Positions 1-31,347 of a DNA stretch of 64,000 nt are shown here, piece by piece. Position numbers and translations under genes: made by a program. The notes below the pieces were generated by a model. It was not told the origin of the DNA, made no database searches, and saw only the letters and a program-made list of their open reading frames with translations. The stretch is taken from the NCBI GenBank assembly GCA_002269645.1, contig NIVC01000372.1:1-64000 (forward strand), given 5' to 3'. The stretch comes from Macrostomum lignano (taxonomy: Eukaryota). Within the stretch, counting starts at the first letter, position 1, and each line of letters opens with the position of its first letter.

Positions 1-57
1 TGTTGGCGCGCGGCGCCCTGACCAGCCGGGTTGCGCTTGGCCGGCTACGAGAGTCGC

Positions 58-219
58 TAGGCCGAGCTGGAGGCCGGCCAGCAGGCGCTGTTGAACGGCG
101 GCGACGGTTGTCGGCTGTCCGAGTGGGCCGAGCGCTGCCTGGACAGCATGCGCGAGCGGCACCGGCGTTCCTACGTTAGAAGCGGCGCGCCTGGTCAGTG
201 TTTAGCTGCTGTCTTATGA
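58..219 (+). other. Possible GC-rich coding exon fragment at the window edge (unassigned)
   Basis: After TAG at 58-60 (possible acceptor), frame 1 reads AELEAGQQALLNGGDGCRLSEWAERCLDSMRERHRRSYVRSGAPG..., ending at TGA 217-219. No family recognised. Confidence 0.25.
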
Positions 220-318
220 AATCCATGTTCGTCTACAGATATGGTCTACTTCTAAAACAAGAAAATAATTTAAACACCCCTCAATAATATTAAATAATAA
301 AAAAGAAATCTTTATAAA

Positions 319-461
319 CATGCATGCGCAACCCCCCCCCCCTGATTTACACTGGCCATACGACTTACTTTTTTTTATAAAAAATGCGACTTGGTCCACC
401 TGGTCCACCACAATTTACGGTGGCCGGATCGGCCAGGTTGGCCAGCAGTTGCGCATGTATG
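319..461 (+). mobile_element. Short MITE-like element, family B copy 1 (ends CATGCATGCGCAAC...GTTGCGCATGTATG)
   Basis: Short terminal inverted repeat. Internal sequence is shared with 46266-46478 (+) and 47454-47718 (-). Confidence 0.6.
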
Positions 462-550
462 AATATGAATGCATTGGCGAGATAAGAAGTTTTCAGTTTT
501 TCTGCACTGAATTCCCAATACCTCACCTGCTGGACTTCCGAATTGCAGAT

Positions 551-826
551 GAAGCCAGCAGGTGTTTTCTCCGAGGGGCGCTCACAAGTTTTTTTCAAGA
601 GAAAAAGTTTAAAAAATCATTGGAGAGCTTTTCTAAACGACTGCAGAGATTTGGTTTTTTACATACATAAAACTATGCAGGTTTTTACCATAGACAAATC
701 CGTCCTGCAGAGACAGGAGCAGCTGGAATTTCGCCGCAACTTTGCTTGCTTGCCGGTCTCGGCAGCAGTTAAAAAAACAGCTTGATAAACTTGTGAGCGC
801 AGCTCGACGAAACACCTGCTGGCTTC
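551..826. repeat. ~40-bp imperfect inverted repeat pair (551-591 and 787-826)
   Basis: GAAGCCAGCAGGTGTTTTCTCCGAGGGGCGCTCACAAGTTT versus the reverse complement of AAACTTGTGAGCGCAGCTCGACGAAACACCTGCTGGCTTC. Confidence 0.7.
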
Positions 827-919
827 AGTCCAGCGTCCTTCTGCCTTGGTTGTCCATAGCGCAAGACCCTGGGTCCTGTTTGATGCTTTGGTCTTGAAGG
901 TAACGCCACGCACTGCGCA

Positions 920-3900
920 ATGAAATGCTTCGATGCACCATCTCATCCCAGCTGCACAGAGTCGTCCAGTCACATCAGCCGCCGCCGCGGTCGACAGCGA
1001 CTCCGATTTGAGCAGAGCGCGACCGCCGCTTCAACAGTGGGACGGGGCTGCAAAAAGCCTAACCAAGCTGTCGGAACAAAGGAGAAGAGAGAGGGAGAAG
1101 ACAGAAGCGGAGGTCCCAGTGGCAGTAGCAGCGGCGGTAGCCACGATAACGATTGCCTGGAGGTACCGGGTTCGCGTCCTATCACAGACCAGCTGATGCG
1201 GAACTACAGGCGCAGCCGGATCAACGAGCCTGACTACTGTCTGGCCTGCGGCGGCTCGGCCGCCAGCGACCCGGCTATCCAGCATCCCGTATTCGCTGGC
1301 CAGCTGTGTCAGCCCTGCAGCCGCCGGGTAAATGACGCCCTTGCCGCTGCCGTCATCGGCGTGGGCGCCCGCGCCTGCTCTGTGTGCGCGATGCGCTGCG
1401 GCGTGCAGGCGGCCACTTGCACAGGCTGCAAACGACTGTTCTGCCAGGTATTACCGGCTTCATGGCTTCATCCGCAATCCTCTGATCTTGTCCGCATCCT
1501 CTCTGATCTTGTCCGCATCCTCTCTGATCTTGTCCGCATCCTCTCTGATCTTGTCCGCATCCTCTCTGATCTTGTCCGCATCCTCTCTGATCTTGTCTGC
1601 ATCCTCTCTGATCTTGTCCGCATCCTCTCTGATCTTGTCTGCATCCTCTGATCTTGTCCGCATCCTCTCAGATCTTGTCCGCATCCTCTCTGATCTTGTC
1701 CGCATCCTCTCAGATCTTGCCTACATTATCTGATCTTGTCCGCATCCTCTCTGACTTTGTCCGCATCCTCTCTGATCTTGTCCGCATCCACTCTGATCCT
1801 GTCCGCATCCACTCTGATCCTGTCCGCATCCACTCTGATCCTGTCCGCATCCTCTCTGATCTTGTCCGCATCCTCTCAGATCTTGCCTACATTATCTGAT
1901 CTTGTCCGCATCCTCTCTGATCTTGTCCGCATCCTCTCTGATCTTGTCCGCATCCGCTCTGATCTTGTCCGCATCCGCTCTGATCTTGTCCGTATCCTCT
2001 CTGATCTTGTCCGCATCCACTCTGATCCTGTCCGCATCCTCTCTGATCTTGTCCGCATCCACTCTGATCTTGTCCGTATCCTATCTGATCTTGTCTGCAT
2101 CCTCTCTGATCTTGTCCGCATCCTCTCTGATCTTGTCCGCATCCTCTCTGATCTTGTCCGCATCCACTCTGATCCTGTCCGCATCCTCTCTGATCTTGTC
2201 CGCATCCACTCTGATCCTGTCCGCATCCTCTCTGATCTTGTCTGCATCCTCTCTGATCTTGTCCGCATCCTCTCAGATCTTGCCTACATTATCTGATCTT
2301 GTCCGCATCCTCTCTGATCTTGTCCGCATCCTCTCTGATCTTGTCTGCATCCTCTCTGATCTTGTCTGCATCCTCTCTGATCTTGTCTGCATCCGCTCTG
2401 ATCCTGTCCGCATCCTCTCTGATCTTGTCTGCATCCTATCTGATCTTGTCCACATCCCGATGACTGTCATCAGCCGTATCCGTGTTCCCGCAGGCCTGTC
2501 TCACCCTTCTTGTCGGCCCGGCCGCCTGGGCCCTGGCCACCTACTTGGAGCCTGACGCTACTGACTGGATTTGCTGTCTGTGCATGTCCGCTCCGATGGG
2601 CCTGCTGCGACCCGCTGGTCGGTAAGGACAGATCAGACTTGTTTTGCACTGTGTTTAGTAACAGTTTTGTTATTGCCTGCGTCCTGACAGGCCAGGCTAC
2701 TGACGTCATTCAGTTATGATCCCCCCAATCCTATTTAGTATTGACGTATTGATTCCTCAGGTGGGAATGTTCCCCATCAGTCCTGACACACTGATCTCTC
2801 AGGTGGGAATATTTCCCATCCGTGTTGATATTGATTCCTCAGGTGGGAATATTCCCCATCAGTATTGACATATTGATCCCTCAGGTGGGAATATTCCCCA
2901 TCAGTCTTGACATATTGATCCCTCAGGTGGGAATATTCCCCATCAGTCTTGACATATTGATCCCTCAGGTGGGAATATTTCCCATCCGTGTTGATATATT
3001 GATCCCTCAGGTGGGAATATTTCCCATCCGTGTTGATATATTAATCCCTCAGGTGGGAATATTTCCCATCCGTGTTGATATATTGATCCCTCAGGTGGGA
3101 ATATTCACCATCAGTCTTGACGTCTTGATCCCTCAGGTGGGAATATTCACCATCAGTCTTGACATATTGATCCCTCAGGTGGGAATATTCCCCATCAGTC
3201 TTGACATATTGATCCCTCAGGTGGGAATATTCACCATCCGTGTTGATACACTGATCCCTCAGGTGGGAATATTCCTCATCAGTCTTGACATATTGATCCC
3301 TCAGGTGGGAATTTTTCCCATCCGTGTAGATGTATTGATCCCTCAGGTGGGAATATTCCCCATCAGTCTTGACAAACTCAGATACTTCAGTTCGGACCAC
3401 TGGTTACCGACGGGCTTAAGCCTCAGCCACACCGTGTACCCACCCCCTCAGGCCTCAGCTCGATCGCGAATCTAGCCCAACTCGCCTGCTGCGCGTCCTG
3501 GTGCTGTTCGACCAGCAGGGGCTCAGCTTAAAGCTGCTGCAGGCAGCTGGGCTCACCTTCACTTTGCTGATGGCCTCTAGTCTGTCGGCAAAATCAACAG
3601 CGTCTATCAACAACGACAGCCAAGTTGTCAATCTCGGTGATGTAGAACTGCTGGAAGACGACCGTCTCGGTGCCGCCCTGCCGATTGACCTGCTGCTGGC
3701 GCCGTCTGCGCCCTCGCCCGACGACCTGGGCTTCTTCGAGTTCCACCGCTGCCTGTCGTCGGTGCGCAAGCTGTCGGCCAGCTTGCAGTGCCGTTTCTAC
3801 TGGCTGTACAGGCCCGAATCGGCTGTGCAGGGGGATGCTAAGAAGCGAGTGACCCGGTTTCTGGAATGCGCTCCTATGAACGACAGCGTATGGGCCGAGT

Positions 3901-4208
3901 TGCCAGCGCCAGATAAAAATTCCAGTGTTATTGAGGCACCGGTTGCTACGGGACCAGCTCAGGAGAATTCGTTGGTTGCTAAGGAGAATACGTTAGCTAC
4001 TGAAGAAAAGAAGCCTATTGCTAAGACAAACTCGTCGGTTGCTAAGGACTCGTCGGTTGCTAAGGACTCGTCGGTTGCTAAGGCCTCGCCAGTTGCTAAG
4101 GACAACTCATCTGTTGCCAAGGTGGACACATCGCAGCTCAGCGATGACGATTTCAAACTAGTGAAGATGCTGCGCAGTCTGCACTTAGTTGTAGCCAAAA
4201 ATTCGTGA
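920..4208 (+). CDS. DNMT3-family protein: ADD zinc-finger domain plus degenerate (inactive) C5-methyltransferase fold, DNMT3L-like architecture; 3 exons
   Basis: Exons 920-1447, 2494-2621 and 3452-4208, with GT-AG introns in phases 0 and 2 that join in frame. ADD: CLAC..HPVFAGQLCQPC..CSVC..CTGCKRLFCQ|ACLTLLVGPAAW..WICCLC..GLLRP (DNMT3A: CISC..HPLFVGGMCQNC..FCVECVDLLVGPGAA..WNCYMC..GLLRR). MTase fold: LRVLVLFD, NLGDVE, PIDLL, FFEFHRCL, FYWLY, VTRFLE (DNMT3A: IRVLSLFD, YVGDVR, PFDLV, FFEFYRLL, FFWLF, ISRFLE). The 5' start is uncertain. Confidence 0.85.
1469..2457. repeat. 21-bp minisatellite (CTCTGATCTTGTCCGCATCCT)n filling intron 1 of the DNMT3-like gene
   Basis: Direct tandem repeats between donor 1448 and acceptor 2493. 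Confidence 0.95.
2745..3372. repeat. 42-bp minisatellite filling intron 2 of the DNMT3-like gene
   Basis: Unit ATTGATCCCTCAGGTGGGAATATTCCCCATCAGTCTTGACAT, repeated in tandem. Confidence 0.95.
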
Positions 4209-4687
4209 ACTTAATAATTTGGCAGAGCAAATTCCCCTGCTAGACTACAACGGTTTTATGACTAATATGAAGCATTTTAATCACGGCTTTGTGGTTTTTA
4301 TAACTCAATAAGCCCTTTATTTGTATGGTTTGTTTGCATTTCTGCATTGAGCTTTACTTGAGTTGTCCACTCAAGAAATGCACTCTCGGTGTTACTTTGA
4401 ACTGCAGCTAAATAATTTCTCTGCTATAATGCACCAATGAAGAACTTTCCTGCGTTTCAATTCTCCAAGTTTCTTGAGTTTAAAAGTTACCTGTTATTGG
4501 ATTAGGTGTATTGTAAACTGCATTTCAGTGTGATGCAGCTAACTGGATACACACTTTGTACTTTAAAGCCTGTCTAAGAAATGAAGGTCACACGTTTCTC
4601 AGGATGGCGCGTTCTGGGAAATTTTTAAAGGAACTGTACTCTTCAGTCCACCGATCAGTCCACCTTGACACCTTGAGCTGTTTAGTG

Positions 4688-7600
4688 TCAGAATCCACCG
4701 CAGCAGCTCCTGCTAGGCTCCAGGTGCTGCCAGAACACCTGCTCCAGAGTTGCTGCTTCATCTTGCTGTTGCAGCTTCCGCTGCCGCCGCTGCCGTCGCT
4801 GCCGTCGCCGCTGCTTCTCTCCATCGTCTGCGCACTTTGCCGGCGATTCGACGGGCGCCGTCGCCGAAGATGACGACAAGTTTTGCGTTGAAGTTGATGA
4901 CGACTCTGACAGTCGCGAAAACTTTGCCAAATCGAGCCAAGTCTCGCCGAGGTGCGCCGGCTGCTGGACAAGTGAGCGCGGCGTCCCGTCTTCCTGATCT
5001 TCCGCTGCCAGCCGCACCGCCACCCGCAGCTGCCAGCTGGCTAGCAGGCCCGGGAACTGCACAAATTTGAACGCGTATCGCCAGTTGGGTTGACCTGAAT
5101 TGAACTCAGCTGGCGGAGTCTGGAAGGTGTCGTTGAACTCTTGGTGGCGGCTACCTTGCGGCGGTAGGATCTGCAACAGCGCTTGAACCTGCTGCGGCGG
5201 CTTTTGGTTTGGAGGCAGCTGCAGATTTGCCGCTTGCAGCAGCGCCACAGTCAGGAACCGGTGCCGTCTGTCGTACCGTATGCCCAGCTGGATTTGGCCT
5301 AGGCCCGCATCCGTGCCTGTGGGAAGGGAGCAAAGAGTAGGGGCGGACGGTCATATCACTATGACTGGGATGGGGAGTGAGTGGCAACAACCCAATGACT
5401 GGGAGAGTCTGGAAACACAACCCAATGACTGGGAGAGTCTGGTAATACACCAATGACTGGGAGAGTCTGGAAACACACCCCAATGACTGGGAGAGTCTGG
5501 TAATACACCCCAATGACTGGGAGAGTCTGGAAACATAACCCAATGACTGGGAGAGTCTGGTAATACACCCCAATGACTGGGAGAGTCTGGAAACACCCCA
5601 ATGACTGGGAGAGTCTGGAAACACCCCAATGACTGGGAGAGTCTGGAAACATAACCCAATGACTGGGAGAGTCTGGTAATACACCCCAATGACTGGGAGA
5701 GTCTGGAAACACCCCAATGACTGGGAGAGTCTGGAAACACCCCAATGACTGGGAGAGTCTGGAAACATAACCCAATGACTGGGAGAGTCTGGTAATACAC
5801 CCCAATGACTGGGAGAGTCTGGAAACACCCCAATGACTGGGAGAGTCTGGAAACACACCCCAATGACTGGGAGAGTCTGGTAATACACCCCAATGACTGG
5901 GAGAGTCTGGAAACACAACCCAATGACTGGAAGAGTCTGGTAATACACCAATGACTGGAAAAGTTTGGCAACACCCCAATGACTGGAAGAGTCTGGTAAT
6001 ACACCAATGACTGGGAAAGTTTGGCAACACCCCAATGACTGGGAGAGTTTGGAACTACACCAATGAATGCAGGGAGAGTCTGGAACTACACCAATGAATG
6101 CAGGGAGAGCCTGGCACTACACCAATGAATGCAGGGAGAGTTTGGAACTACACCAATGAATGCAGGGAGAGTCTGGAACTACACCAATGAATGCAGGGAG
6201 AGTCTGGAACTACACCAATGAATGCAGGGAGAGTCTGGAACTACACCAATGAATGCAGGGAGAGTCTGGCACTACATCAATGAATGCAGGGAGAGTCTGG
6301 AACTACACCAATGAATGCAGGGAGAGTCTGGAACTACACCAATGAATGCAGGGAGAGTCTGGAACTACACCAATGAATGCAGGGAGAGTCTGGAACTACA
6401 CCAATGAATGCAGGGAGAGTCTGGCACTACACCAATGAATGCAGGGAGAGTCTGGAACTACACCAATGAATGCAGGGAGAGTCTGGAACTACACCAATGA
6501 ATGCAGGGAGAGTCTGGAACTACACCAATGAATGCAGGGAGAGTCTGGAAACACACCCCAATGACTGGGAGAGTCTGGAAACACACTCCAATGACTGGGA
6601 GAGTCTGGAAACACACCCCAATGACTGGGAGAGTCTGGAAACACACTCCAATGACTGGGAGAGTCTGGAAACACACCCCAATGACTGGGAGAGTCTGGAA
6701 ACACACTCCAATGACTGGGAGAGTCTGGAAACACACCCCAATGACTGGGAGAGTCTGGAAACACACCCCAATGACTGGGAGAGTCTGGAAACACACCCCA
6801 ATGACTGGGAGAGTCTGGAAACACACCCCAATGACTGGGAAAGTCTCTGAGAGAGAAATCTTGACCAACCCAAACTACAGTGGTCTACGCTGACAAGCGT
6901 ACCTTGCTGGCAAGTTTGAGAAGCAAAAAACCTGAGATGATGCAGCATTTGAGGGATATAAATCCGGGAAAAGTGAGCACATCTTGGATTTGGCCAGTTG
7001 TAAACCCTCCGCCTAGCTCTCTGCGCCCTAGCTCTCTGCTCTCTGCGCCTGAGGTATAGCCTGGCACGCTCTATTCATTGTAGTCTCAACCCTATCTTAT
7101 TCATTACTGGTAAATCTATTTTTAGCTGGCTTTGTAGTCTTGAGCAAATACTTGTCTAACAGTCATTGGAGTCTAATATAATTCGTTTCCTTTTCAAAGC
7201 GTGGTCGGATCCTTATTTAAGTCGAATTTTTCGGTCTATCGGAATCAGATGATTTTAAGTATTTTTGTGAATCCAAGTCCTGCAGCAGACTGCAGCTAGC
7301 TATACTTTACACTGCAGCCTTGCATTCTTGCCTTCAATAGCATCGCTCGTCGCAGATCGCTTCACCCAGCTGTCTGTATGTGGCAGCTGCTCTGGCGCTT
7401 TCTGCTCATCCTTCCTCCGCTCCGCATCCTGCCAGCACATGTATGAAGGCCTCCGCGCTGATCGATGCTGCTTAGACTTCTGCCTGCGCTGCTCAGACGG
7501 CAGCTGCTGCAGCACTGTTGAGACCATCCGCATCAGCTTCGGAGCTGACGCTGCCTTCGGTGCGGCCAGCCGCCTGCCCGCTCGGTTTGCCTTATGAGTC

Positions 7601-8029
7601 AGTTTCCTGCATTGCGGTTTGAGGGTTCGGTCTGGATTAGCGGTCTATCTATCGGTCTATCTATCTGTCTGTCTATCTATCTGTCTATCTATCCATATAT
7701 CTGTAAACGCTTAAGTGTCCTCCTTCAGTAGAGCCTTCCACCTTGTTTTAGGTACCGTTAATCAAACCACTAGCAATGTCCCTGTATCAGTCTATCCACT
7801 CCACCAGCAAAAGTCACCTGACTGTCGTTCTTGTACTCTTGGCCTCCTCGCCCAGCCGGTCAAACAGGCGAGCTCGGGTCTTGCGCTTCCTCCGCCAGCA
7901 GCAGACGCAGCCCAGAGCGCACAGCGCCACCAGGCCCAGCGTCGGCAACGAGATGGCCAACGCTAGCGAATGAACCGACGACGGCAGGATTTCGGGTGTT
8001 TTTGCTGAGACTGCTATTGGTCTTGGCAT
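4688..8029 (-). CDS. Synaptotagmin-like protein: N-terminal TM anchor and a single C2 domain
   Basis: Exon 8029-7818 encodes a TM helix, a Cys cluster and a basic stretch (LALAISLPTLGLVALCALGCVCCWRRKRK). It joins in phase 2 to an exon starting at 7606. The last exon, 5316-4688, starts at a CCACAG acceptor and encodes GLGQIQLGIRYDRRHRFLTVALLQAANL...FQTP...LRVAV...LGETWLDL (C2 fold). The middle junctions (about 7300-6900) are unresolved. Confidence 0.65.
5383..6845. repeat. 30/31-bp minisatellite in A-B-A block arrangement (intronic)
   Basis: Unit A CCAATGACTGGGAGAGTCTGGAAACACACC; unit B CCAATGAATGCAGGGAGAGTCTGGAACTACA (about 6058-6545). Confidence 0.95.
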
Positions 8030-8726
8030 CGCTAATCTCTCTAAGCTGTCTTATCCTATGATCCTCTGGTTGCTCTTTTTATTGCACAGTTTGGTTAGCG
8101 CTGATTCTCCTGAGCCCAGCTGTTATTGGCTGCATTCTTATTGCTATTTTTAGCTTTCTTAGCGAGGAGCTCCCGTCGTACTTTCCTCATTACCCATTCG
8201 TTACACGTTACTGCTGGGGTATATAGTAGCATCTCGCGCATTTGTTACCTGCTTAGCTTCGATTTTTAAAGTCACTTTTTAACCGTTTTTTCTACAATAG
8301 TTGCTTTTTGGTATGCAATTTTTAAGCCGAAATTTATTGCATTTATCAAATATCTTTTTTGTAAATCTAAGAAACATGTTACACAATAGAATTTCAACTC
8401 GATCTGTTCAATTCGAGGCCAGCTTTACGTGAGAAGAACATATAAAATATCTAACTAATCTCCGCTTCGATGGAACTGACATTGAATGTCGCTACTAATG
8501 GAAACTACTCAAACTAAGACAGCTCAGTGAGAGAGAGAGAGAGAGAGAGAGAAACACAGTAACCATCAGCCAACCGCTTCAAGCCAGTTCATTTCTTAGA
8601 AAAAACTGGTTTTCCGCTCCCTCGGTTACTTAATGGTGACAATAATTCGAGCCCCAGCCTCCAAGCGACCTGTCCTGGGACCCCTCAATTCAGCGTCCAT
8701 CAATCAATCTTGGCCAGTCCGCCATC

Positions 8727-9857
8727 ATGCGCCGCGAGTCGCAGTTCGCCATCATGCGCATGCGAGGCTACGACAGGCTGGTGATGAAGAACGGCAAGTG
8801 CAACGTCGTCCATAGCAACGTGCGGAAGCGGAAGCGCCGCTACTTTGGCGACATCTTCACCACCCTGGTGGACATGAAGTGGCGCTACTGCCTAGCCGTG
8901 TTCTTCTCCGCCTTCTTCAGCTGCTGGCTGCTCTTCACCTTCTTCTGGTGGGCGCTCAGCTACGGCCATGGAGACTACCTGACCACCCCGCCGCCGGGGT
9001 TCGAGCCCTGCCTACTCAACGTGAACTCCTTCCTGGCCACGCTGCTGTTCTCCATGGAGACGCAGATCACCATCGGCTACGGGTCGCGGTCGCCGTCGGA
9101 CAAGTGCCCGATTGCGGTGCTGCTGGTGACGCTGCAGTCCTACGGCAACCTCATCATCACGACGCTGATGACTGGTGCGGTGCTGGCCAAGCTGACGAAG
9201 TCGAAGAACCGGACAGGCACGCTGCTGTTCAGCAAAAATGCGGCAATCTGCAGCCGCGACGGGCATCTCGTGCTGCTCTGCCGCGTTGGCGACGCTCGCC
9301 ATTCTCACCTCATCGACTGCAGCGTGCGCGGCGTCCTGGTGAAGCGGCGACTCACCGCTGAAGGCGAGACGCTCTTACTGGAGCAGCAGGTCATCAACAT
9401 GGGCCTGGACGGCGGCGATGCCCGCCTCTTCCTCGGTTGGCCGGTGGTTGTCCAGCACAGAATCGACAGCGGCTCGCCATTTTGGAACATGTCCGCCAAG
9501 GACCTCTACGCGGCCGACTTTGAGCTGCTGGTCTTCATGAACGGCGTCGTGATCTCGACGGGCGCCACCACGGAGGCCCGGACCAGCTACCTGCCAACGG
9601 AGATCCGCTGGGGACACCGCTTCGAGGACCTCAGCATCTTGCCAACGGACACAGGCGAATGCGTCATCGACTACGAGGGCTTCCACGACACGGTGACCGT
9701 GCCCGGCTTTCCCCGCTGCTCCGCCCTGGAGCTGGCCAGGACCGGCCTGCTCGACGGCGAGGCTTCCGAACGGGAGGGGGGCTCGAACCACGGACTACCG
9801 GCTGCAGTGGAGTCGGCTGAAATGCAACGCCAGAAAGACGTGTCAATCAAGTTCTGA
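8727..9857 (+). CDS. Inward-rectifier potassium channel (Kir family), intronless
   Basis: RLVMKNGKCNV, YFGDIFTTLVDMKWRY, FLATLLFSMETQITIGYGSR (GYG filter), LLFSKNAAI, HRIDSGSPFW, FELLV, RTSYLPTEIRWGHRF. Confidence 0.95.
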   Translation: MRRESQFAIMRMRGYDRLVMKNGKCNVVHSNVRKRKRRYFGDIFTTLVDMKWRYCLAVFFSAFFSCWLLFTFFWWALSYGHGDYLTTPPPGFEPCLLNVNSFLATLLFSMETQITIGYGSRSPSDKCPIAVLLVTLQSYGNLIITTLMTGAVLAKLTKSKNRTGTLLFSKNAAICSRDGHLVLLCRVGDARHSHLIDCSVRGVLVKRRLTAEGETLLLEQQVINMGLDGGDARLFLGWPVVVQHRIDSGSPFWNMSAKDLYAADFELLVFMNGVVISTGATTEARTSYLPTEIRWGHRFEDLSILPTDTGECVIDYEGFHDTVTVPGFPRCSALELARTGLLDGEASEREGGSNHGLPAAVESAEMQRQKDVSIKF

Positions 9858-12800
9858 TGAGAAGGAAAGGAATTATTCGAAAATGAGGCTTACACAGGTG
9901 CATATCTATCGCAACCGTTTTGATAAGAAATATTCGTTAAATTTGCTATCAACAATTCACAAGCTTCACTTGATATTTATTTATTTACCAGCTCTAATTG
10001 TCTTCTTTTTCTTAGCAACTGTCCACTTGAGCTCGTATTTAAACATTTTTACGGCTTGTACTTTGTTAGAGTTCAGTGCGCAGGCTCTCGTTCTCCAACT
10101 CTTTCTCTCTACATTTTACCTTTTTATTTCACTATCGTGTGTGCTTCCTCATTTATATATTTTCAACTTTGATATGCAATAAACATATTATACCAGTTGA
10201 TATTAACTCGTGAAATTAACCATTAATTTGTTAATCCGGCTATGCGAGCATTAACGAGGCTCGTTTATTTGTGCCAGGCAAACGCAGAATCCTGACAAAT
10301 TTCCAGAGAGCAAACAATATTTAAATTGACACGCGCATCAGAATTGCGTTGCTTGCGCAATTGCCATTAGTAGCAACAGGAAACTTCCAGTGGCACCGAA
10401 GGCTAGATTTCGCTACAAAATTAAGCTTTAATAAGCGCTGTAGGCCAGCACGCACTCATAAATTCCTAAAACCAATGAGACGATATAAAATTAACATCCA
10501 GAATCCTAATTTTAATTTCCAAACAAAAAGCTTTATAAATATCAATAGAGCTATATAAGAAAGGCAAGATATATCAAACGATTTACACTGGGATTCCCTT
10601 CTATCAAAAGCAATAACAATTTTTGTGCTGTACAAATGAACACAGCTCCTACCTCCGTATAAAAAACCTGCCTCCTAAAATTTTCCAAGAAAACATAGTA
10701 CACAATCCGCCCTAACTGAGTGGCCGCACACTAAATTCGTGGCGGGACCGTGGGACGCGTTTTAGCACTGAGCTTTTCATGCTCTTCCCACTAACTTGAC
10801 GCGTTTCGGCCTCCTAAACCATTAAGGTAAATGTTTTTGATAATGGTTTACCCAATATATGACGCTACGACCTTTTAGCGTGCTCTCATGCACTCGCCTT
10901 TGCTAAACTCGCGTCTATGCAGACTCCAACCCCCATCATCAGAATTATTTCAACAGCGAGTTCTCACGCCACCAATCCTGTAGTCTACAATGCAAGCTGC
11001 TAGAGAAAACATTGAAAACTTTCGCTGTCGGCGGCGGGAGGGGCGGAGCGGCTGTTCGAGTCCGCGTGTGTGTTCCCACGCGCTCATCCAATATTTTGAA
11101 GACGCGGAAACATCGTGTACTGCACGGCTATGCATGTATAAGTAGTTTAAGTATGGCAATGGCAACGCAATTCTGCCACATATGTATTTATGCTGCAGAC
11201 TGCATTACGCAGGGTTTAGTATAGCTTATTGAGTTGTTTGTTTGCACAAGTTCTGCATGGCGAGGGAGCTGGGGGCGGTAACACTGGGTAACTGAGAAAC
11301 TTTCAAAGGCATGCAGTCGGCTCCGCCCCACCCCCCGTGAGGGCCGATTTGCCCACTTATGGCTACTGCGCTAATTGCCTGCTTTCACTAAATGGGCCAG
11401 TGAAAGTGAAAAAAAACAGACAGATGCATTATGAGAGTGCCTTGTCCACTTCAGACAGGAGAATCGCCAGTTAATTGTTGCTTTATCAAGCTAGATTTAC
11501 GGATTAATAGACATTCAATTAATAAAGATGCATTTAATCGAATGAAAATTATATTTGAGTGAAAAAAATCGAAACGAAAGGTTAGGGTCATTTTGTACCT
11601 ATCAACTAGCCATCAACTCCATATGCGACTGCGGATATACATGTACAAAAGAAGGAAAATTTATGTAAAAGTGTCTGTTTGTGCAGCCGAATTCATGCAC
11701 GGTGAAATGTATTCATTGCATGTATTTAAAAACACTGCAATTATGCACGGTGCGTGTATCATGTACTCTCGAAGTGTATACATACTAGTGTAAATACTTT
11801 GGACATTGTTCACTCGATGTTACGACCTTCAGTCAGTCTATGGCATCATCGATCTTGATATTGTACCATCGGACTACTATTGGGCGGCCTGAAATTACAC
11901 GATTACCATCGACGATTACATTTTGGCTAGCAAAGGCCGGGTCGAAAATGTTAATATCAACCAAAACAGTTTTCAGCTAATCTTGTATTTTTTGTATAAA
12001 ACATGAATTTGCTTTTAGACAATTTTACCAATATACGCTCGTATTGCGTGGTCTATTTTCAACTTTAGCTACATCTCCCTCTAATGCTCACATGTAGATG
12101 AGACAGGGAAGGGGAGAGAAGTAAGGGGAGAAAGATTAGGAGGGAAGGGAATTGTTAGGGGAGATCGGGCAAGGGGAGCTAGAGGTAGGGGAGAGGGTAG
12201 GGAGAGAGGGAGAGGGCTGACTATCGCTCCAATCTGGCTCGCCAACTGTCGGGAGTAGCCGGGGCTCAACATGCCAGTGTGCATCATACTCGTGTTCGGC
12301 ATTGGTAGTCAATACATATTGCGAAACAGCTGGAACCTAGTGCATAAGTGCATTAAATGCCTGCAATTCTGACAGCTAAGGGCATGTCAGCTTAGTTGAG
12401 GATAGATGAGAATTGCGTGCGGGAAGTTTTCCCGCCGAGGTTTGCCCTCGCGCTTGCCCTTTCCTTTTTTAAGGACAGTGGGGGATTCTGCTCTTGCCAT
12501 CTTGTCAAGCTTGTGCGCAACTGCCTGAGTTGTTACGGCGTGCTTGTGAAAGGCGACACAGCGAATTGAATGGCGATACATGTACATGTACATAGAACAG
12601 CTGCATGCTGTGCAGGAATCTGAGTCGCTACGCATTGCGAATTGACTAATTACCGACAAGCATGCATGTTCACCAACGGAAGCGGCACAAAATGCGTGTT
12701 AGCTATAGCAGCAGAGACTTTTAGCTTGTCAAAAGCCATGCAATGCTACTGCTAGAATTTCTCAGATCGCTAGAGCGGCCAGTTGCTGATGCAACTTCTG

Positions 12801-13672
12801 AGTTTATTCGTGTCGTGGACATGCACACTATTCCGATATTTTCAATTCGAGGTGAGCACCTGGACCTGCTGGGACTCTAGTTGTTATAGATTTACATAGA
12901 AGCACTCTTCATCTGTTTTCATCAGATCGAGACTCTTGTTGCAGCAACGGTTTGAGCTGCAATTTCTACTTGTCTGCTGCGAGGCAGCGATTGATGAAAA
13001 TCACCGCGTTACGGACTTCTAAAGATTATCGCCGAGCGCGAATAAAAGCTCCTCCAATACAGTTAGAGTCGTTTAAAGTTTATAATTTCTTACTAAAAGT
13101 AGTGACTATACTAGAACTGACAGCTATTAGTTAAATATGTCTATTGTTTTTGTCAACAGAATTTAGTGCTGCCTCTGAATTTCCGTGTGTGTAAATATTT
13201 TCTGTTTTCTTTGGCTGTCTGCTATTGTTCTTCACATCTTGTTTTCTTAGTATGGAACGAGTCTTGTATATACACTGCAAAACAGAACGTATCAACGTAT
13301 TGTATCATTTAATTAGATTTAGATTCAGGTGAATCTTATGAATTGACCTAAATGTATACAGAGGGACGCAGATTGAATTTTTGCTCAAAGCCTTGCATGA
13401 TTTTCTAATGGCATTATAGATCCAGTATGTTTTCACTCCAGGATGCTAATTATAGAACTCCTTGGCTCGAATAAATTAAAGCAAATATAAACAGCTGTCG
13501 CTTAGTCTATGGCACCTAGCTAGGCTTTGAAGGCGGATAATAAAGGCTACGGAGCCCTCTTGATTTCTCATTACCGCCCTTAAAGCCTAGGTACTTGTAT
13601 ACAATACTCGAAATCACATTGTTTGTTGTGAACGCCCGGCAGTTATTAGAAGAGACCCATTAGTCCGCTGGA

Positions 13673-17318: not shown

Positions 17319-19378
17319 TACACCTTTTTGCGTTCTATTTCGATAAAAATGCATTCAATTTCGGCAAACTGGCTTTCATTTTCGGCATCAGCAACGGCCG
17401 CACATCCAAACTGCATTCGAATTCGACAAACCGAGAAACAGTTTCGGCAAACTGCACTCAATTTCGGCAAACTGTATTCAATTTCGGCAAACTGTATTCA
17501 ATTTCGGCAAACTGTATTCAATTTCGGCAAACTGTATTCAATTTCGGCAAACTGCACTCAATTTCGGCAAACTGTATTCAATTTCGGCAAACTGCACTCA
17601 ATTTCGGCAAACTGTATTCAATTTCGGCAAACTGTATTCAATTTCGGCAAACTGTATTCAATTTCGGCAAACTGCATTCAATTTCGGCAAACTGTATTCA
17701 ATTTCGGCAAACTGTATTCAATTTCGGCAAACTGTATTCAATTTCGGCAAACTGTATTCAATTTCGGCAAACTGTATTCAATTTCGGCAAACTGCATTCA
17801 ATTTCGGCAAACTGTATTCAATTTCGGCAAACTGCACTCAATTTCGGCAAACTGTATTCAATTTCGGCAAACTGTATTCAATTTCGGCAAACTGTATTCA
17901 ATTTCGGCAAACTGTATTCAATTTCGGCAAACTGCATTCAATTTCGGCAAACTGCACTCAATTTCGGCAAACTGCACTCAATTTCGGCAAACTGCACTCA
18001 ATTTCGGCAAACTGCATTCAATTTCGGCAAACTGCACTCAATTTCGGCAAACTGTATTCAATTTCGGCAAACTGTATTCAATTTCGGCAAACTGCACTCA
18101 ATTTCGGCAAACTGTATTCAATTTCGGCAAACTGTATTCAATTTCGGCAAACTGTATTCAATTTCGGCAAACTGTATTCAATTTCGGCAAACTGTATTCA
18201 ATTTCGGCAAACTGTACTCAATTTCGGCAAACTGCACTCAATTTCGGCAAACTGTATTCAATTTCGGCAAACTGTATTCAATTTCGGCAAACTGTATTCA
18301 ATTTCGGCAAACTGTATTCAATTTCGGCAAACTGCATTCAATTTCGGCAAACTGCACTCAATTTCGGCAAACTGCACTCAATTTCGGCAAACTGCACTCA
18401 ATTTCGGCAAACTGCATTCAATTTCGGCAAACTGCACTCAATTTCGGCAAACTGTATTCAATTTCGGCAAACTGTATTCAATTTCGGCAAACTGCACTCA
18501 ATTTCGGCAAACTGCACTCAATTTCGGCAAACTGTATTCAATTTCGGCAAACTGCATTCAATTTCGGCAAACTGCACTCAATTTCGGCAAACTGCACTCA
18601 ATTTCGGCAAACTGCACTCAATTTCGGCAAACTGCATTCAATTTCGGCAAACTGCACTCAATTTCGGCAAACTGTATTCAATTTCGGCAAACTGTATTCA
18701 ATTTCGGCAAACTGCACTCAATTTCGGCAAACTGTATTCAATTTCGGCAAACTGTATTCAATTTCGGCAAACTGTATTCAATTTCGGCAAACTGTATTCA
18801 ATTTCGGCAAACTGTATTCAATTTCGGCAAACTGTACTCAATTTCGGCAAACTGCACTCAATTTCGGCAAACTGTATTCAATTTCGGCAAACTGTATTCA
18901 ATTTCGGCAAACTGTATTCAATTTCGGCAAACTGTATTCAATTTCGGCAAACTGCATTCAATTTCGGCAAACTGCACTCAATTTCGGCAAACTGCACTCA
19001 ATTTCGGCAAACTGCACTCAATTTCGGCAAACTGCATTCAATTTCGGCAAACTGCACTCAATTTCGGCAAACTGTATTCAATTTCGGCAAACTGTATTCA
19101 ATTTCGGCAAACTGCACTCAATTTCGGCAAACTGCACTCAATTTCGGCAAACTGTATTCAATTTCGGCAAACTGCATTCAATTTCGGCAAACTGCACTCA
19201 ATTTCGACAGCGCCAATCTAAGCAGTTTGCCGAAATTGAATGCAGCTTGCCGAAATTGAATACAGTTTGCCGAAATTTCAAATGCAGTTTGGATGTGCGG
19301 CCGTAGCTGATGCCGAAAATGAAAGCCAGTTTGCCGAAATTGAATGCAGTTTAATCGAAATAGAACGCAAAAGGTGTA
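17319..19378. mobile_element. Foldback-type element with long TIRs and an internal 20-bp satellite array
   Basis: 17319-17420 is the reverse complement of about 19275-19378 (TA-CACC...GGTG-TA). (CAATTTCGGCAAACTGYAYT)n runs about 17440-19205 in the left arm; only a few inverted units occur in the right arm. Confidence 0.8.
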
Positions 19379-21629: not shown

Positions 21630-24600
21630 ACTGACAGGCAGCAACAGGGCTCGCTGGCCAGCCGGCGCGGTGTCGGGCGGTGCATCGGCGGCGCTCCGCC
21701 ACTGCCAGTCAGGCCGCTGATGCAGCTGCCGCTGGCGCTCAGACAAGGTGCGCTAGCGTCCCCGCCATTGCTTTGGTAATCACCGCCAAGTGAGCGACGA
21801 TTGACAACAACAGGGCAGTCGGCCATCGGGCAGTCGGGCGAGGAGGGACTCTCCGCCAGATTGACAGACTGGCAAAGCATGCGGGAAAAGGTAATTTGAA
21901 TTACTTGCCAAACGCATGCAATGGATTGCTCTAAAATGTACACTAGTGTTTTGTAAGGTCTATCTGTGAGAGTTGTCAGAGTGACCTGAGGATCTGGGAG
22001 AGTTGTCAGATTGACCTGAGGATCTGTGAGAGTTGTCAGAGTGACCTGAGGATCTGGGAGAGTTGTCAGAGTGACCTGAGGATCTGTGAGAGTTATCAGA
22101 TTGACCTGAGGATCTGTGAGAGTTGTCAGATTGACCTGAGGATCTGGGAGAATTATCAGACTGACCTGAGGATCTGTGAGAGTTTTCAGATTGACCTGAG
22201 GATCTGTGAGAGTTGTCAGACTGACCTGAGGATCTGTGAGAGTTGTCAGACTGACCTGAGGATCTGTGAGAGTTGTCAGACTGACCTGAGGATCTGGGAG
22301 AGTTGTCAGATTGACCTGAGGATCTGTGAGAGTTGTCAGATTGACCTACGCAATCTGAGAATCTGGGAGTCGACAACTCAATCTGAGGATGAGGGAGATA
22401 ACCAAAGGCAGGATTAACACACTCACAGATGTCTCGGCTAGACTAGCAGCAGCCAGGTGCATTCTCTGATGGCTGGCCAGGGCTCGCCGGCTGGGAAAGT
22501 GCCGATCGCACTGGGCACAGTCGTGCCGCCTAGAGTGACAGTCTGTGTGCCGGCGCAGGGCGTGCTGATGATTAGTAGTGAAGGGGCACAGTGGACAGGA
22601 CAGCTGGGCCTTGGGCGTGTTGCTATGCCGGTCAGCAACGTGACGCGCCCGTTCGGCTTTGGAGGCGAACAGCTCCGTACAGGCGGCGTGCGGGCACATC
22701 CAGCGCCGGTGGCCGTGCAACAGATGCCGTTCGAAATGGGTCCGACTGCCGCTGTACCGGGCCGAGCAGAGCGGGCAAGTTAGCGGCTTCGAGTGCTGAC
22801 AATTCACGTGCCTGTTGAGGCCTTTGCGACTGCGGAAGGCGCGGCCGCAGCCGGGCCAGTCGCAGAACAGATAGTCGTGAACATTGAGCTGATGCTCGCG
22901 AAGCTGCTCAGCATTGGGAAATGCGACAGCCGACGTTAAGCAGGCGGGATGATCGCAGAATAGCAGGGTTGCGTCGGCGTCTTCAATCAGCGATGCCGCC
23001 GATTTGACGGCGGCCTCCTTGGAAGCCGGCGGTGCAACTGCCGACGTGTTGGCAATATCGGTGGCTACCAGATCAAGGACAACGGAGTCGGCTGACGCTG
23101 ACGCCACCGCGGCCACCGTCGCCTGAGTTGGCGTCTCCGGTGTCGGCGTTGGCGCTTGCGACTCGAAAAAACTCGCAGCGGAGGAAGCGACAAACACGGA
23201 GGTCGGCGGAGGCGGTGGCTGCTGCGTTGCTTGCGGCTGCTGCTGCTGCTGCTGAGACTTGTTCGGTTCAATCAGCAGCCGTCGACTGATGGGGCACTCA
23301 GAGAGCGGCCGCTTCAACAGCGGAGCCGCAACCGCGCCACCCGCTGAGGTAGCTGGAGAAGAGACGGCGGCAGCGGCGGCGGCTGCAGAGGACTCCTGGT
23401 CAAACGAAGTGAGCCTGTCCGTCTGACAAACAATGGGTAATGAAGACACATGTAAGTAGAATGATACTTGTAAAATAGTTGATTCTCACTATTGATCTAT
23501 AGTCCCAGCAGATCTATAATCCCAGCAGATCTATAATCCCAGCAGATCTATATAATACCAGCAGATCTATAATCCCAGCAGATCTATATAATCCCAGCAG
23601 ATCTATAATCCCAGCAGATCTATATAATCCCAGCAGATCTAAAATCCCAGCAGATCTATAATCCCAGCAGATCTATAATCCCAGCAGATCTATATAATCC
23701 CAGCAGATCTATAATCCCAGCAGATCTAAAATCCCAGCAGATCTATAATCCCAGTAGATCTACTCGTACAATCCTAGCAGATCTAAAATCCCAGCAGATC
23801 TAAAATCCCAGCAGATCTATAATCCTAGCAGATCTAAAATCCCAGCAGATCTATAATCCCAGCAGATCTAAAATCCCAGCAGATCTAAAATCCCAGCAGA
23901 TCTATAGTCCCAGCAAATCTAAATCCTATGGATCCACGCACCGGATGAAAGCAGGGCAAGTCACGGCTAAAGCTGGCATCAAGTGACAGATTGCGACTCC
24001 GCGACTGCTGCATAGAGGAGGAGGATGCAGCAGCCGCGGCCGCCGGCGCCCGACGATCCCTGTGGACTCCGGCAGCTGCCACTGCGTCGCCGTCCTCGCT
24101 GCAGACGTAGCCGACGCCGCCGCCGCCGACTCGCCAAGCGAACAACGGAGCAGAAGTGGCGCTTGCGTAGGAGCGCGACTCGCTAGTAGGGAAGGACAAC
24201 GCCGACGAGGTCGACTCGCCGTCGCCTTCGGTGTCGCCGCCGCCGCCTCCGGCTATTGAGGAAGGCCGATAGCAGCGCAGCATCATAGGCTGATGGAAGC
24301 AACCACCTAGATCGCCTTGGGCGTGCACCTGCGGCCTGGGCAGGATAAGGTTGACAGGATCTAATCGGCGCAGCTGGGTGTCGAAAGCCGGCGCGGTCAG
24401 CTGGGCGCAGCTGGCCAGACTGGGATTGCCGAACAGCACGGAGCCGCCAGACGGGAACGGGGCGTCGATGAGCGAGTCGACTAGCACGGACTCGCCTAGG
24501 CCGGCGAACGGGTCAAACATAGCCCATTGCGGCGCGGCTGGACGCTGGCTACTAACTTGCGGAGATTGCGGCGGCTCTGGCTGATCGTGAGCGGCGCAGC

Positions 24601-30980: not shown

Positions 30981-31039
30981 CTCCAGTTTGAATTTGGATT
31001 GACAGAAAAGGAAACATAGGAAAATTTTACTTCTACGAG

Positions 31040-31347
31040 AAGGCAAAAAAGTATAGCTTAGTTAGGGTTGGCTGGGGTGGGGTTAGGGTTGGCTGGGGTT
31101 GGGGTTGGCTGGGGTGGGGTTAGGGTTGGCTGGGGTTGGGGTTGGCTGGGGTGGGGTTAGGGTTGGCTGGGGTGGGGTTAGGGTTGGCTGGGGTGGGGTT
31201 AGGGTTGGCTGGGGTTGGGGTTGGCTGGGGTGGGGTTAGGGTTGGCTGGGGTTGGGGTTGGCTGGGGTGGGGTTAGGGTTGGCTGGGGTTGGGGTTGGCT
31301 GGGGTGGGGTTAGGGTTGGCTGGGGTTGGGGTTGGCTGGGGTGGGGT
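31040..31347 (+). repeat. G-rich tandem repeat (GGGGTTAGGGTTGGCTGGGGT)n with G-quadruplex potential
   Basis: Continuous G3-G4 runs with short loops; includes TTAGGG. Confidence 0.9.

Follow-up and report, generated by a model that had tools for sequence, protein, structure and literature searches.

An intriguing question raised by the start of the window, that is, the whole stretch of 64,000 nucleotides analysed here, is what a DNMT3-family gene may be for once its catalytic core has degenerated. We found that positions 1-4208 (+ strand) hold a spliced gene of the DNMT3 family from Macrostomum lignano, belonging to transcript cluster Mlig004102, which comprises three near-identical genomic copies and has a product of around 664 aa. 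The sole close database protein is M. lignano BOX15_Mlig004102g2 (P0001), and its locus (L001) is 96.5% identical to the window over the aligned 6.5 kb, repeats counted, in agreement with the initial annotation, which had guessed at a flatworm host. The non-repeat stretches compared between the two are ~99% identical or better, the differences being mostly 1-nt indels, and there are 2 substitutions within the gene, too few to gauge selection. An exhaustive HMMER search of 1.8 billion proteins linked the spliced product to an M. lignano DNMT3 (E=7e-18), and neither this search nor a word-index protein search, which returned P0001 only, found orthologs in other species. An exact protein look-up through the neighbouring IRK protein found no further genomic copies, the window has no tRNA or Rfam matches, and the name Mlig004102 is absent from the main texts searched and from the Brand 2020 supplements.

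The protein had been proposed to emerge only after splicing across repeat-filled introns, and both parts of this proposal stand: the segments 920/952-1447, 2494-2621 and 3452-4208 form a single ORF with similarity to DNMT3s far above chance, and two of the introns are occupied by minisatellites. The proposed start codon, ATG 920, has to be given up, given that it falls inside intron 1 and that the true frame differs upstream of 1007. The complete exon 1 spans 10001-10614 in L001, and its start lies ~421 nt upstream of the window. The GenBank model of this sister copy (P0001) is RNA-seq guided and has the same two junctions as the window; it shares the exon 1 donor (CCTG/gtcagt at 193/194) and the intron 3 acceptor (ccccctcag/G at 3451/3452). 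The gene is organised as follows.

1..193, + strand: 3' end of coding exon 1, with the PWWP helical tail and a linker; aligned to L001 10422-10614.
194..951, + strand: intron 1 (GT..AG); P0001 reads YVRSGAP/AAQSRPVTS across 193/952.
550-827, + strand: MITE-like element of 278 bp in intron 1, with inverted repeats at 550-591 and 787-827.
952..1447, + strand: coding exon 2, encoding a linker rich in Ser and Gly, the GATA-like finger of the ADD and the first half of its PHD finger.
1232-1255 (DYCLACGG) and 1283-1318 (HPVFAGQLCQPC), + strand: ADD GATA-like finger in exon 2, from Pfam PF17980 (E=9e-7) and alignments.
1343-1447, + strand: first half of the ADD PHD finger in exon 2, from alignments.
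1448..2493, + strand: intron 2 (GT..AG), with a 21-bp minisatellite in 47 copies (1480-2457); junction used by P0001.
2494..2621, + strand: coding exon 3, end of the ADD PHD finger (CLTLLVGP...WICCLC, 2566-2583); identical in L001.
2622..3451, + strand: intron 3 (GT..AG), carrying 15 copies of a 42-bp minisatellite (2737-3374).
3391..3458, + strand: relic of formerly coding DNA (3' end of intron 3), reading RSDHWLPTGLSLSHTVYPPPQ in the frame of exon 3.
3452..4208, + strand: last coding exon, which encodes the dead MTase-like domain and the tail and ends in the stop codon TGA (4206-4208).

A convergent gene on the minus strand starts ~500 nt downstream of this stop.

Over 523 codons the coding frame is free of stops, 8-32 stops occur in each of the other five frames, and every one of 2000 shuffles contained at least one. 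The assembled copies carry small lesions of their own. Compared with L001, the window copy has an additional G at 59/60 and lacks a C at 1007, with a stop at 177-179 between them, while L001 has one coding frameshift, at the position equivalent to 1400; the sole public protein model, P0001, is translated out of frame and conceals the MTase-like domain. If these 1-nt indels were real, neither of the assembled copies compared (window and L001) would encode the full protein. Most likely, however, they are long-read assembly errors. Over positions 1-1470, the window and L001 differ by 7 one-nt indels and 1 substitution, and the M. lignano assembly was made from PacBio reads with Canu and Pilon polishing and contains 180 Mb of duplicated blocks of at least 95% identity.

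Another lesion is found at the end of intron 3. The relic begins at an upstream acceptor (cttcag/T, 3390/3391), and a 7-nt near-tandem duplication within it (CCCTCAG 3445-3451, GCCTCAG 3452-3458) shifts the frame into a stop at 3473-3475. When one 7-mer is taken out, the ORF becomes continuous and runs collinear with the active paralog's linker (RSDWRQRLQTEPHSLHPPPPPELQRS...LRVLSLFDG); the global alignment then scores 78, as opposed to 56 in the current form. The acceptor at 3452 bypasses the duplication, and the 250 codons downstream stay open. Ahead of the acceptor in use, VYPPP can be read in frame; this stretch was considered as a sign of pseudogenisation and rejected, as it belongs to the relic that this acceptor bypasses.

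Three domains can be recognised in the product, and the first of them had been reported missing. Exon 1, most of which lies upstream of the window, encodes a PWWP domain, which was overlooked because the window boundary cuts off this exon. Its product matches DNMT3A/B PWWP structures at E=3e-10 to 1e-6 (phmmer), the AF2 model has a barrel with pLDDT 92-96, and the best 28 Foldseek matches of this model are all DNMT3A/B entries, chiefly PWWP domains; the Pfam scan did not report a PWWP entry for it. Three residues of the PWWP cage are substituted (F to A, W to Y and D to E). The architecture is thus PWWP-ADD-dead MTase. Residues 94-361 of the spliced ORF match human DNMT3L at E=2.7e-14 (phmmer against the PDB), which is the best PDB sequence match over both domains, and in the AF2 model most 10-residue blocks of ADD and MTase have a pLDDT of 74-95, with dips at two loops.

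The ADD domain reaches 29.2 bits for Pfam ADD_DNMT3 (PF17980, cut-off 26), and in the same scan PF21255 stays at 12.6 bits, below its cut-off of 27. The domain retains 15-16 of 16 ADD positions that are invariant in the family, 12 of them cysteines, and the lone mismatching invariant cysteine is an alignment slip at a loop-length change. At the positions of DNMT3A D529/D531/Q534, which form the acidic H3K4me0 pocket in ADD-H3 structures, the flatworm protein has V/G/A, and only 3 residues, instead of 8, make up the strand between its second and third PHD cysteines. Therefore, the description of the ADD as intact holds for the zinc-ligand cysteines, all of which are present, and fails for this presumed pocket and the PHD strand; the alignment indicates that the H3K4me0 pocket has been lost from a domain that kept its zinc ligands.

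The MTase-like domain has changed much more. Only 21 of the 55 MTase family-invariant positions (38%) are kept, and the unevenness relative to the ADD domain is significant (Fisher p=1e-4). The domain nevertheless matches DNMT3C (E=4e-5) and DNMT3A (E=3e-4) across motifs I-VI with phmmer, and all 50 Foldseek matches listed are DNMT3A, 3B or 3L structures, with E down to 2e-16; Pfam PF00145 has no match in the product. The AF2 model has a single pLDDT dip in this domain, to 54. Its features are given below.

Within 3486-3527, + strand: motif I remnant LFDQQG (FDG to FDQ; FDQQGLS), from the invariant-column table.
3570-3581, + strand: motif II, E to S, from the same table.
3630-3644, + strand: motif III, GDV kept, from the same table.
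Within 3681-3725, + strand: motif IV, GGSPCN to APSAPS, from the alignment.
3729..3755, + strand: helix GFFEFHRCL, aligned with DNMT3A L730-L738; the second F is the F732 equivalent (FF interface).
Within 3792-3827, + strand: motif VI, ENV to RPE, from the alignment.
3843..3875, + strand: helix KRVTRFLECAP, aligned with DNMT3A RDISRFLESNP; the F is the F772 equivalent (FF interface).
3885-3911, + strand: motif VIII, VWAELPAP, RxR absent, from the alignment.
3912..4142, + strand: low-complexity tail replacing the TRD and motif IX; pLDDT ~35 (AF2).
4030-4103, + strand: KDSSVA repeat of 18 bp (6 codons) found by TRF, in frame, with 4 copies in the window and 5 in L001.
4143..4205, + strand: C-terminal helix DDDFKLVKMLRSLHLVVAKNS, aligned in the MSA with the terminal helix of DNMT3/DNMT3L, e.g. 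LVKNCFLPLREYF.

The catalytic loop at motif IV has a deletion of ~14 residues. Motifs I, II, IV, VI and VIII, which serve AdoMet binding and catalysis, are gone in the alignment, and the product presumably cannot methylate DNA. The dead motifs of the initial annotation (FDQ, APSAPS and RPE) and the register of its two FF helices with those of DNMT3A F732/F772 were both reproduced. It had also proposed that the KDSSVA repeat replaces motifs IX and X and the RD region, and this needs qualification: a disordered, low-complexity tail does replace the TRD (target-recognition domain) and motif IX, but motif X is probably kept in part as the C-terminal helix (model residues 366-377, pLDDT ~75-80 in AF2). 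Given that the degenerate motifs sit in register and collinear within one continuous exon, no hidden exon can supply the PC and ENV motifs.

Several observations indicate that the gene is transcribed in a regulated manner. In Supplementary Table 2 of Grudniewska 2018, Mlig004102.g1-g3 are entered as TRANSSPLICED; the transcript is trans-spliced, irradiation-sensitive and classed as “Neoblast, stringent”, and the germline column is empty. The logFC is 2.0 for G2/M vs G1 and -0.99/-1.24/-1.94 after irradiation, with FDR down to 9e-25, values that take the three copies together. The neoblast gene list of the same study names the cluster “DNMT3A”. Thus, a spliced mRNA is on record, as had been anticipated, but the germline role that had been expected is at odds with a somatic stringent-neoblast assignment.

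A possible partner of the active type is also encoded in the genome, as the initial reading needed. P0002 (UniProt A0A1I8IPI0) is an active-type M. lignano DNMT3 with FDG, GGSPCS, ENV, RRARLFWGN and GRSW, and together with P0019 and P0159, likewise active-type M. lignano DNMT3s, it carries FFEFHR and SRFL. By score, P0002 is the closest relative (E=7e-18), with 40% identity by phmmer and 32% by BLASTP; it has a linker collinear with that of the dead paralog and LPIDLL, FFEFHR and CLTLL(V/I)G in common with it. Unlike the latter, it has every catalytic motif, a normal TRD and, where the H3K4 pocket lies, GDDG. The rare residues that the dead copy shares with the M. lignano active DNMT3 number 9, compared with 6-8 for others, which is nonsignificant.

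As for its origin, in an NJ tree with 200 bootstraps, the vertebrate DNMT3s enclose the DNMT3L clade (shark, bat and desman), with which the flatworm protein groups in 20/200 bootstraps, a weak result with long branches. The tree points to a flatworm protein that is not an ortholog of vertebrate DNMT3L and whose likeness to it is convergent, since the DNMT3L clade lies within the vertebrate DNMT3s and the flatworm protein so rarely joins it. The claim of independent evolution is thereby upheld, as far as a tree dominated by long-branch attraction to insect dead copies allows, while the accompanying view of DNMT3L as an amniote innovation is shaky, as sharks carry proteins named DNMT3L.

The comparison with known systems is instructive. 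Like vertebrate DNMT3L, the flatworm protein combines an ADD with an MTase-like fold without PC/ENV, lacks the TRD and motif IX, keeps a C-terminal helix and the FF phenylalanines (DNMT3L F261/F301 = DNMT3A F732/F772), and coexists with active DNMT3s in the same genome. It is not of the same design, contrary to what had been stated, as it has a PWWP domain and V/G/A at the presumed H3K4me0 pocket; moreover, it has a disordered repeat of ~75 residues where DNMT3L has a short linker, and its gene is enriched in somatic stem cells, whereas DNMT3L is germline-restricted. The PWWP-ADD-dead MTase arrangement is shared with DNMT3B3 and other inactive DNMT3B isoforms. DNMT3B3 is also inactivated by loss of part of the TRD/motif IX region and acts as an accessory subunit at the FF interface of DNMT3A2/3B3 complexes, structures of which are among the Foldseek matches. 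However, DNMT3B3 is produced as a splice isoform by an active gene and still has motifs I-VI, while the flatworm protein comes from a separate gene in which all motifs are degenerate.

Among invertebrates, a dead DNMT3 paralog already has a published precedent. Daphnia magna DNMT3.1 is without 5/6 MTase motifs, exists beside an active DNMT3.2 and has been explicitly likened to DNMT3L (PMC8016896). It is starvation-induced and affects life history, and is not known to have a link to stem cells. It belongs to another phylum and probably has an independent origin, and we liken it to the flatworm protein by description. In addition, paralogs from Gryllus (P0063), Thrips palmi (P0081) and Blattella germanica (P0076) keep the ADD and have lost PC/ENV, and those of Gryllus and Thrips also end after motif VIII. 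They group with the flatworm protein in the NJ tree on long branches, with 78 and 51/200 bootstraps, which leaves the grouping unsupported, and they share no rare residues with it beyond background. As far as the literature searched shows, these insect paralogs are known only from databases.

Taken together, these observations favour a transcribed DNMT3 pseudoenzyme paralog that acts as a non-catalytic subunit or regulator and arose independently of DNMT3L, a reading to which we give about an even chance. The gene probably regulates rather than performs methylation because every catalytic motif is lost and the chromatin-binding and dimerisation parts are kept. The protein would have originated as a DNMT3 duplicate, separately from vertebrate DNMT3L, and would most likely dock through its FF helices onto an active DNMT3, by analogy with DNMT3L and DNMT3B3 on DNMT3A/B; chromatin targeting would come from the PWWP and not from an H3K4me0-reading ADD. 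We infer this cofactor role wholly from such comparisons, and the FF phenylalanines are weak evidence for docking because they are fold-core residues conserved in most DNMT3s. A more specific version, which is possible although rather doubtful, is that of a neoblast-specific, PWWP-guided subunit that docks by FF on the active DNMT3 and sets the sites of de novo methylation, or decides if it takes place at all, in pluripotent somatic stem cells, as one of several independent TRD-less inventions of the DNMT3L type (vertebrates, Daphnia, crickets, thrips and cockroaches).

Reviews give M. lignano merely as a flatworm that retained DNMT1 and DNMT3. If its stem-cell-enriched “DNMT3A” is a pseudoenzyme beside a separate active DNMT3, its methylation toolkit would need to be reread, and dead DNMT3 partners, which have evolved repeatedly, would gain a spiralian example; if the docking reading is true, active DNMT3s repeatedly recruit dead copies of themselves. 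The advance is incremental, as the principle was already set by DNMT3L, DNMT3B3 and Daphnia DNMT3.1. The cofactor hypothesis is directly testable in M. lignano, since RNAi works and transgenesis is established in this species.

A somewhat unlikely alternative is a methylation-independent chromatin factor, a PWWP/ADD reader or scaffold in stem cells that does not dock on active DNMT3. Both DNMT3.1 of Daphnia and catalytically inactive DNMT3B have been suggested to act in this way. The retained PWWP and ADD folds and the neoblast enrichment agree with it, but the maintenance of the MTase-like fold and of both FF helices is harder to explain if the reader domains alone mattered, and the substituted H3K4me0 positions also count against an ADD reader. 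Its further appeal comes from Daphnia, in which the DNMT3.1 mutant shows altered expression of 2770 genes and the protein plays little part in methylation (PMC8016896), and from the low 5mC reported in M. lignano (PMC11292947).

We consider it unlikely that the gene is a transcribed, decaying pseudogene, that is, a functionless DNMT3 duplicate with an ORF that is a mere relic. Copy-specific frameshifts, the 7-nt duplication that shifts the frame of the ancestral exon, loss of all catalytic motifs, the failure to detect orthologs in the searches above and an out-of-frame public model would suit decay, with which the V/G/A pocket, the altered PWWP cage and the low-complexity TRD are also compatible. 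Nevertheless, the frame is free of stops despite ~32-40% identity to the closest paralog, the retention is strongly uneven (zinc ligands ~100%, MTase invariants 38%), the AF2 models are confident, and the mRNA is trans-spliced and expressed in a regulated, stem-cell-specific way. The copy-specific frameshifts come with an indel:substitution ratio of 7:1, typical of assembly error rather than mutation, and splicing to the acceptor in use skips the 7-nt lesion.

Finally, a still active methyltransferase, produced through an alternative isoform or an unseen catalytic exon, is highly improbable, as we found no points in its favour and it is contradicted by the lack of a PF00145 match, by the collinearity of degenerate motifs I, IV, VI and VIII in one exon, and by the stop at 4206-4208, beyond which the convergent gene soon begins.

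The gene on the forward strand at window 1-4208 (cluster Mlig004102) is a real, expressed and catalytically dead DNMT3 paralog. The window as a whole is eukaryotic in character: exons in it are GC-rich, and introns are dense with minisatellites. Among 5.8 billion protein clusters, a single close protein was found, P0001 ([quoted passage not shown]), which is encoded by L001, a near-identical second copy of the locus (NIVC01000352.1, assembly Mlig_3_7) that is collinear with window 1-12928. The initial annotation had supposed a flatworm host, and both the protein and its locus are indeed from M. lignano.

The two repeat-filled introns that had been proposed are real. Those at 1448-2493 and 2622-3451 are both GT..AG and contain minisatellites (21 bp x 47 and 42 bp x 15, respectively), and their junctions are crossed exactly by the annotated coding sequence of P0001; their removal leaves one ORF that ends with a TGA at 4206-4208. 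Given that this annotation derives from genome-guided assembly of RNA-seq data with StringTie, TACO and TBONE (PMC5730564), the splicing is supported by transcripts. The ATG at 920 was mistaken for the start of the gene: P0001 begins 421 nt 5′ of window position 1, and its exon 1 ends at window 193 (CCTG/gtcagt) and is joined to window 952 (catcccag/CTGCAC), so that this ATG lies inside intron 1. With the upstream exon borrowed from L001, the reconstructed protein has 664 aa. Intron 1 also holds a 278-bp MITE-like element (window 550-827) whose two ends, 550-591 and 787-827, are imperfect inverted repeats some 42 nt long.

The MTase-like domain aligns in register with DNMT3A, 3C and 3L, and essentially none of the catalytic and cofactor residues is retained.

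State of the MTase-like domain relative to the DNMT3 family
Motif I: FDGIATG replaced by FDQQGLS
Motif II: Glu replaced by Ser
Motif III: GDV retained
Motif IV and catalytic loop: shortened from 26 to 12 residues, no PC
Motif VI: ENV replaced by RPE
Motif VIII: RxR lost, VWAELPAP left
TRD and motif IX: about 75 low-complexity residues instead, including the KDSSVA repeat (AF2 pLDDT about 35)
C-terminal helix: aligned to that of DNMT3/DNMT3L and modelled at pLDDT 75-80

In the same alignment, the segments GFFEFHRCL and VTRFLE contain the residues that correspond to DNMT3A F732 and F772, the FF interface through which DNMT3 subunits dock, under a numbering that we take to be set by C710, E756 and R736 of the aligned human protein.

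The protein had been thought to lack a PWWP, which is incorrect. DNMT3A/B PWWP structures are matched by its N-terminus (E=3e-10 to 1e-6), with barrel and helical bundle both covered by the alignment, AF2 models the fold with a barrel pLDDT of 92-96, and the top 28 Foldseek matches of this model are all DNMT3A/B entries, chiefly PWWP domains. The cage residues F236/W239/W263/D266 of DNMT3B align to A/Y/W/E here, and comparable "WLAE" variants are found in active tick DNMT3s. The ADD is detected above threshold (Pfam PF17980) and keeps 15 of 16 family-invariant positions, 12 of them cysteines, the sole mismatch (a cysteine) being an alignment slip at a loop of changed length. The description of this domain as intact nevertheless applies to the zinc scaffold only, since the residues aligned to DNMT3A D529/D531/Q534, which read unmethylated H3K4 in ADD-H3 structures, are V/G/A, and the stretch from the second to the third PHD cysteine is reduced from 8 to 3 residues. 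The active M. lignano paralog, P0002, retains GDDG at the pocket positions.

This paralog (UniProt A0A1I8IPI0) is also the top non-self match in an exhaustive HMMER search (E=7e-18), and it carries FDG, GGSPCS, ENV, RRARLFWGN and GRSW, together with FFEFHR and SRFL. Further copies of active-type DNMT3 exist (P0019 and P0159), so the dead protein does not want for a candidate active-type partner in its own genome. Another M. lignano protein, P0184 (UniProt A0A1I8F4V2, named "USP domain-containing protein"), is 51% identical to the active DNMT3 at 66% query coverage and is probably a fused or mis-modelled extra copy.

As for expression, the transcript cluster MligTCv3c-10395.0 (Mlig004102.g1, g2 and g3) appears in Supplementary Table 2 of Grudniewska et al. 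2018, where it is trans-spliced, enriched in S/G2/M (logFC 2.0 in intact, 1.5 in cut and 1.9 in juvenile worms) and depleted after irradiation (logFC -0.99, -1.24 and -1.94 at 12, 24 and 72 h; FDR 7e-8 to 9e-25). It is classed as "Neoblast, stringent", with the germline column empty, and labelled "DNMT3A" on a best human match of only 87 bits (PMC5816591), a score that fits a protein without an intact MTase domain.

The proposed analogy with DNMT3L stands in part. The dead MTase fold, the FF helices and the presence of an active-type candidate partner in the genome agree with it, whereas the presence of a PWWP, the loss of the H3K4me0 pocket and expression in stem cells rather than the germline do not. 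DNMT3L shares with the flatworm protein a dead, TRD-less MTase fold and the FF phenylalanines, while DNMT3B3 and Daphnia DNMT3.1 share the retained PWWP and ADD, and by this comparison the protein would most resemble non-catalytic DNMT3 subunits in function. A cofactor mechanism is a plausible hypothesis, and a methylation-independent chromatin role is a live alternative.

Recent pseudogenisation is also a live alternative to a maintained dead DNMT3, and several observations bear on it. The 61 nt 5′ of the current acceptor (3391-3451) read RSDHWLPTGLSLSHTVYPPPQ, in frame with exon 3 and collinear both with the active paralog's linker and with the family-conserved R-x-D-W ... Y-P-P-x-P, until a 7-nt near-tandem duplication at 3445-3458 causes a frameshift. 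Splicing to the RNA-supported acceptor at 3452, on this pyrimidine-rich stretch, bypasses the lesion, and the 250 codons downstream stay open. All 523 codons of the coding frame are free of stops, whereas the other five frames have 8-32 and shuffled sequences 15.7 on average (0 of 2000 stop-free). Invariant residues are kept unevenly (ADD 15/16 vs MTase domain 21/55; Fisher p=1e-4), a pattern that uniform decay would not produce. AF2 gives confident models for the ADD and MTase-like domains, and Foldseek returned DNMT3A, 3B and 3L only, among the matches listed.

Over positions 1-1470, seven 1-nt indels and a single substitution separate the window from L001; in exons 3 and 4, the differences are a single substitution and one unit of the 18-bp repeat. 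Three of the seven indels are in coding sequence: the window copy has an extra G at 59/60 and lacks a C at 1007, which puts about 63 codons off frame with a stop at 177-179, and L001 lacks a G at the equivalent of 1400, owing to which the P0001 translation makes no sense beyond about residue 355. Every coding lesion is unique to one copy, and the frame is open if the undamaged variant is taken at each site. Assembly errors are the likelier reading, given the 7:1 ratio of indels to substitutions, which is unlike real divergence (beyond about 7.7 kb, substitutions between these loci far outnumber indel events, 105 to 22), and a PacBio/Canu assembly, polished with Pilon, that has 180 Mb in blocks duplicated at at least 95% identity (PMC5730564). 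P0001 (L001 10001-13950) is the sole public protein of this gene, and because of the 1-nt deletion the public annotation shows the ADD only and hides the MTase-like domain. No hidden exon could supply PC and ENV or restore catalysis, since the degenerate motifs share one exon and a convergent gene lies about 500 nt past the stop.

In a neighbor-joining tree with 200 bootstraps, the dead copy joins other long branches with low support (Gryllus in 78/200, Thrips in 51/200), and it groups with the active M. lignano DNMT3 and with the DNMT3L clade in 20/200 each; rare shared residues do not discriminate among these candidate relatives. The DNMT3L clade sits inside the vertebrate DNMT3s, and the flatworm gene is thus not a DNMT3L ortholog. 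Among invertebrates there is already a published precedent, Daphnia DNMT3.1, for which the comparison to DNMT3L was made explicitly (PMC8016896). DNMT3-like proteins without PC/ENV occur in Gryllus (P0063), Thrips palmi (P0081) and Blattella germanica (P0076), two of the three ending after motif VIII, as DNMT3L does, and they suggest that dead DNMT3 copies evolved recurrently; the literature records DNMT3 loss for Orthoptera and Thysanoptera. Sharks (Pristiophorus and Heptranchias; P0036 and its cluster) have DNMT3L-named proteins that possess an ADD and a 3L-like C-terminus but lack PC/ENV, and these cluster with mammalian DNMT3L in the tree, so DNMT3L seems to predate amniotes. In view of the Daphnia, insect and shark cases, calling DNMT3L an amniote innovation, as the initial annotation did, or the flatworm gene an invertebrate first, is too strong. 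Our literature search found no paper calling the M. lignano gene a pseudoenzyme, and reviews mention for this species retention of DNMT1 and DNMT3 and a low level of 5mC, and nothing further.

Downstream, L001 and the window share a minus-strand hypothetical gene and then an inward-rectifier K+ channel, and none of the seven neighbours identified with Pfam is related to DNA methylation.

Neighbouring genes in the window (Pfam)
8727-9857, forward strand, inward-rectifier K+ channel
22346-23449, reverse strand, C2H2 zinc-finger protein
about 27000-31050, reverse strand, DNA photolyase split by minisatellite introns
41985-42392, reverse strand, CENP-S
43729-44826, reverse strand, TRMU/MnmA-type tRNA 2-thiouridylase
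51845-52264, reverse strand, EF-hand protein
54617-55426, reverse strand, inosine-uridine nucleoside hydrolase

Between window 1-12928 and L001 10422-23040, divergence rises abruptly near 7.7 kb. The non-repeat sequence compared on the left side has many 1-nt indels but just 2 substitutions; the right side has 105 substitutions (about 1.7%) and 22 indel events, with 8 substitutions and no indels in the K+ channel coding sequence. Such a step resembles a mosaic of haplotypes or homeologs, gene conversion or a chimeric assembly.

Minisatellites with units of 17-80 bp, reaching about 1.8 kb, are spread over the whole window; those that were checked are intronic, and many show up in the ORF track as spurious ORFs of great length.

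Minisatellite tracts in the window
1480-2457
2737-3374
5387-6846
17442-19206
25989-26941
27545-28548
32468-33589
37420-38438
38851-40132
53891-54593

A G-rich tandem repeat at 31061-31348, with TTAGGG-like units (GTTAGGGTTGGCTGGGGTGGG) and periods of 21, 37 and 58, adjoins the 5′ end of the photolyase-like gene.
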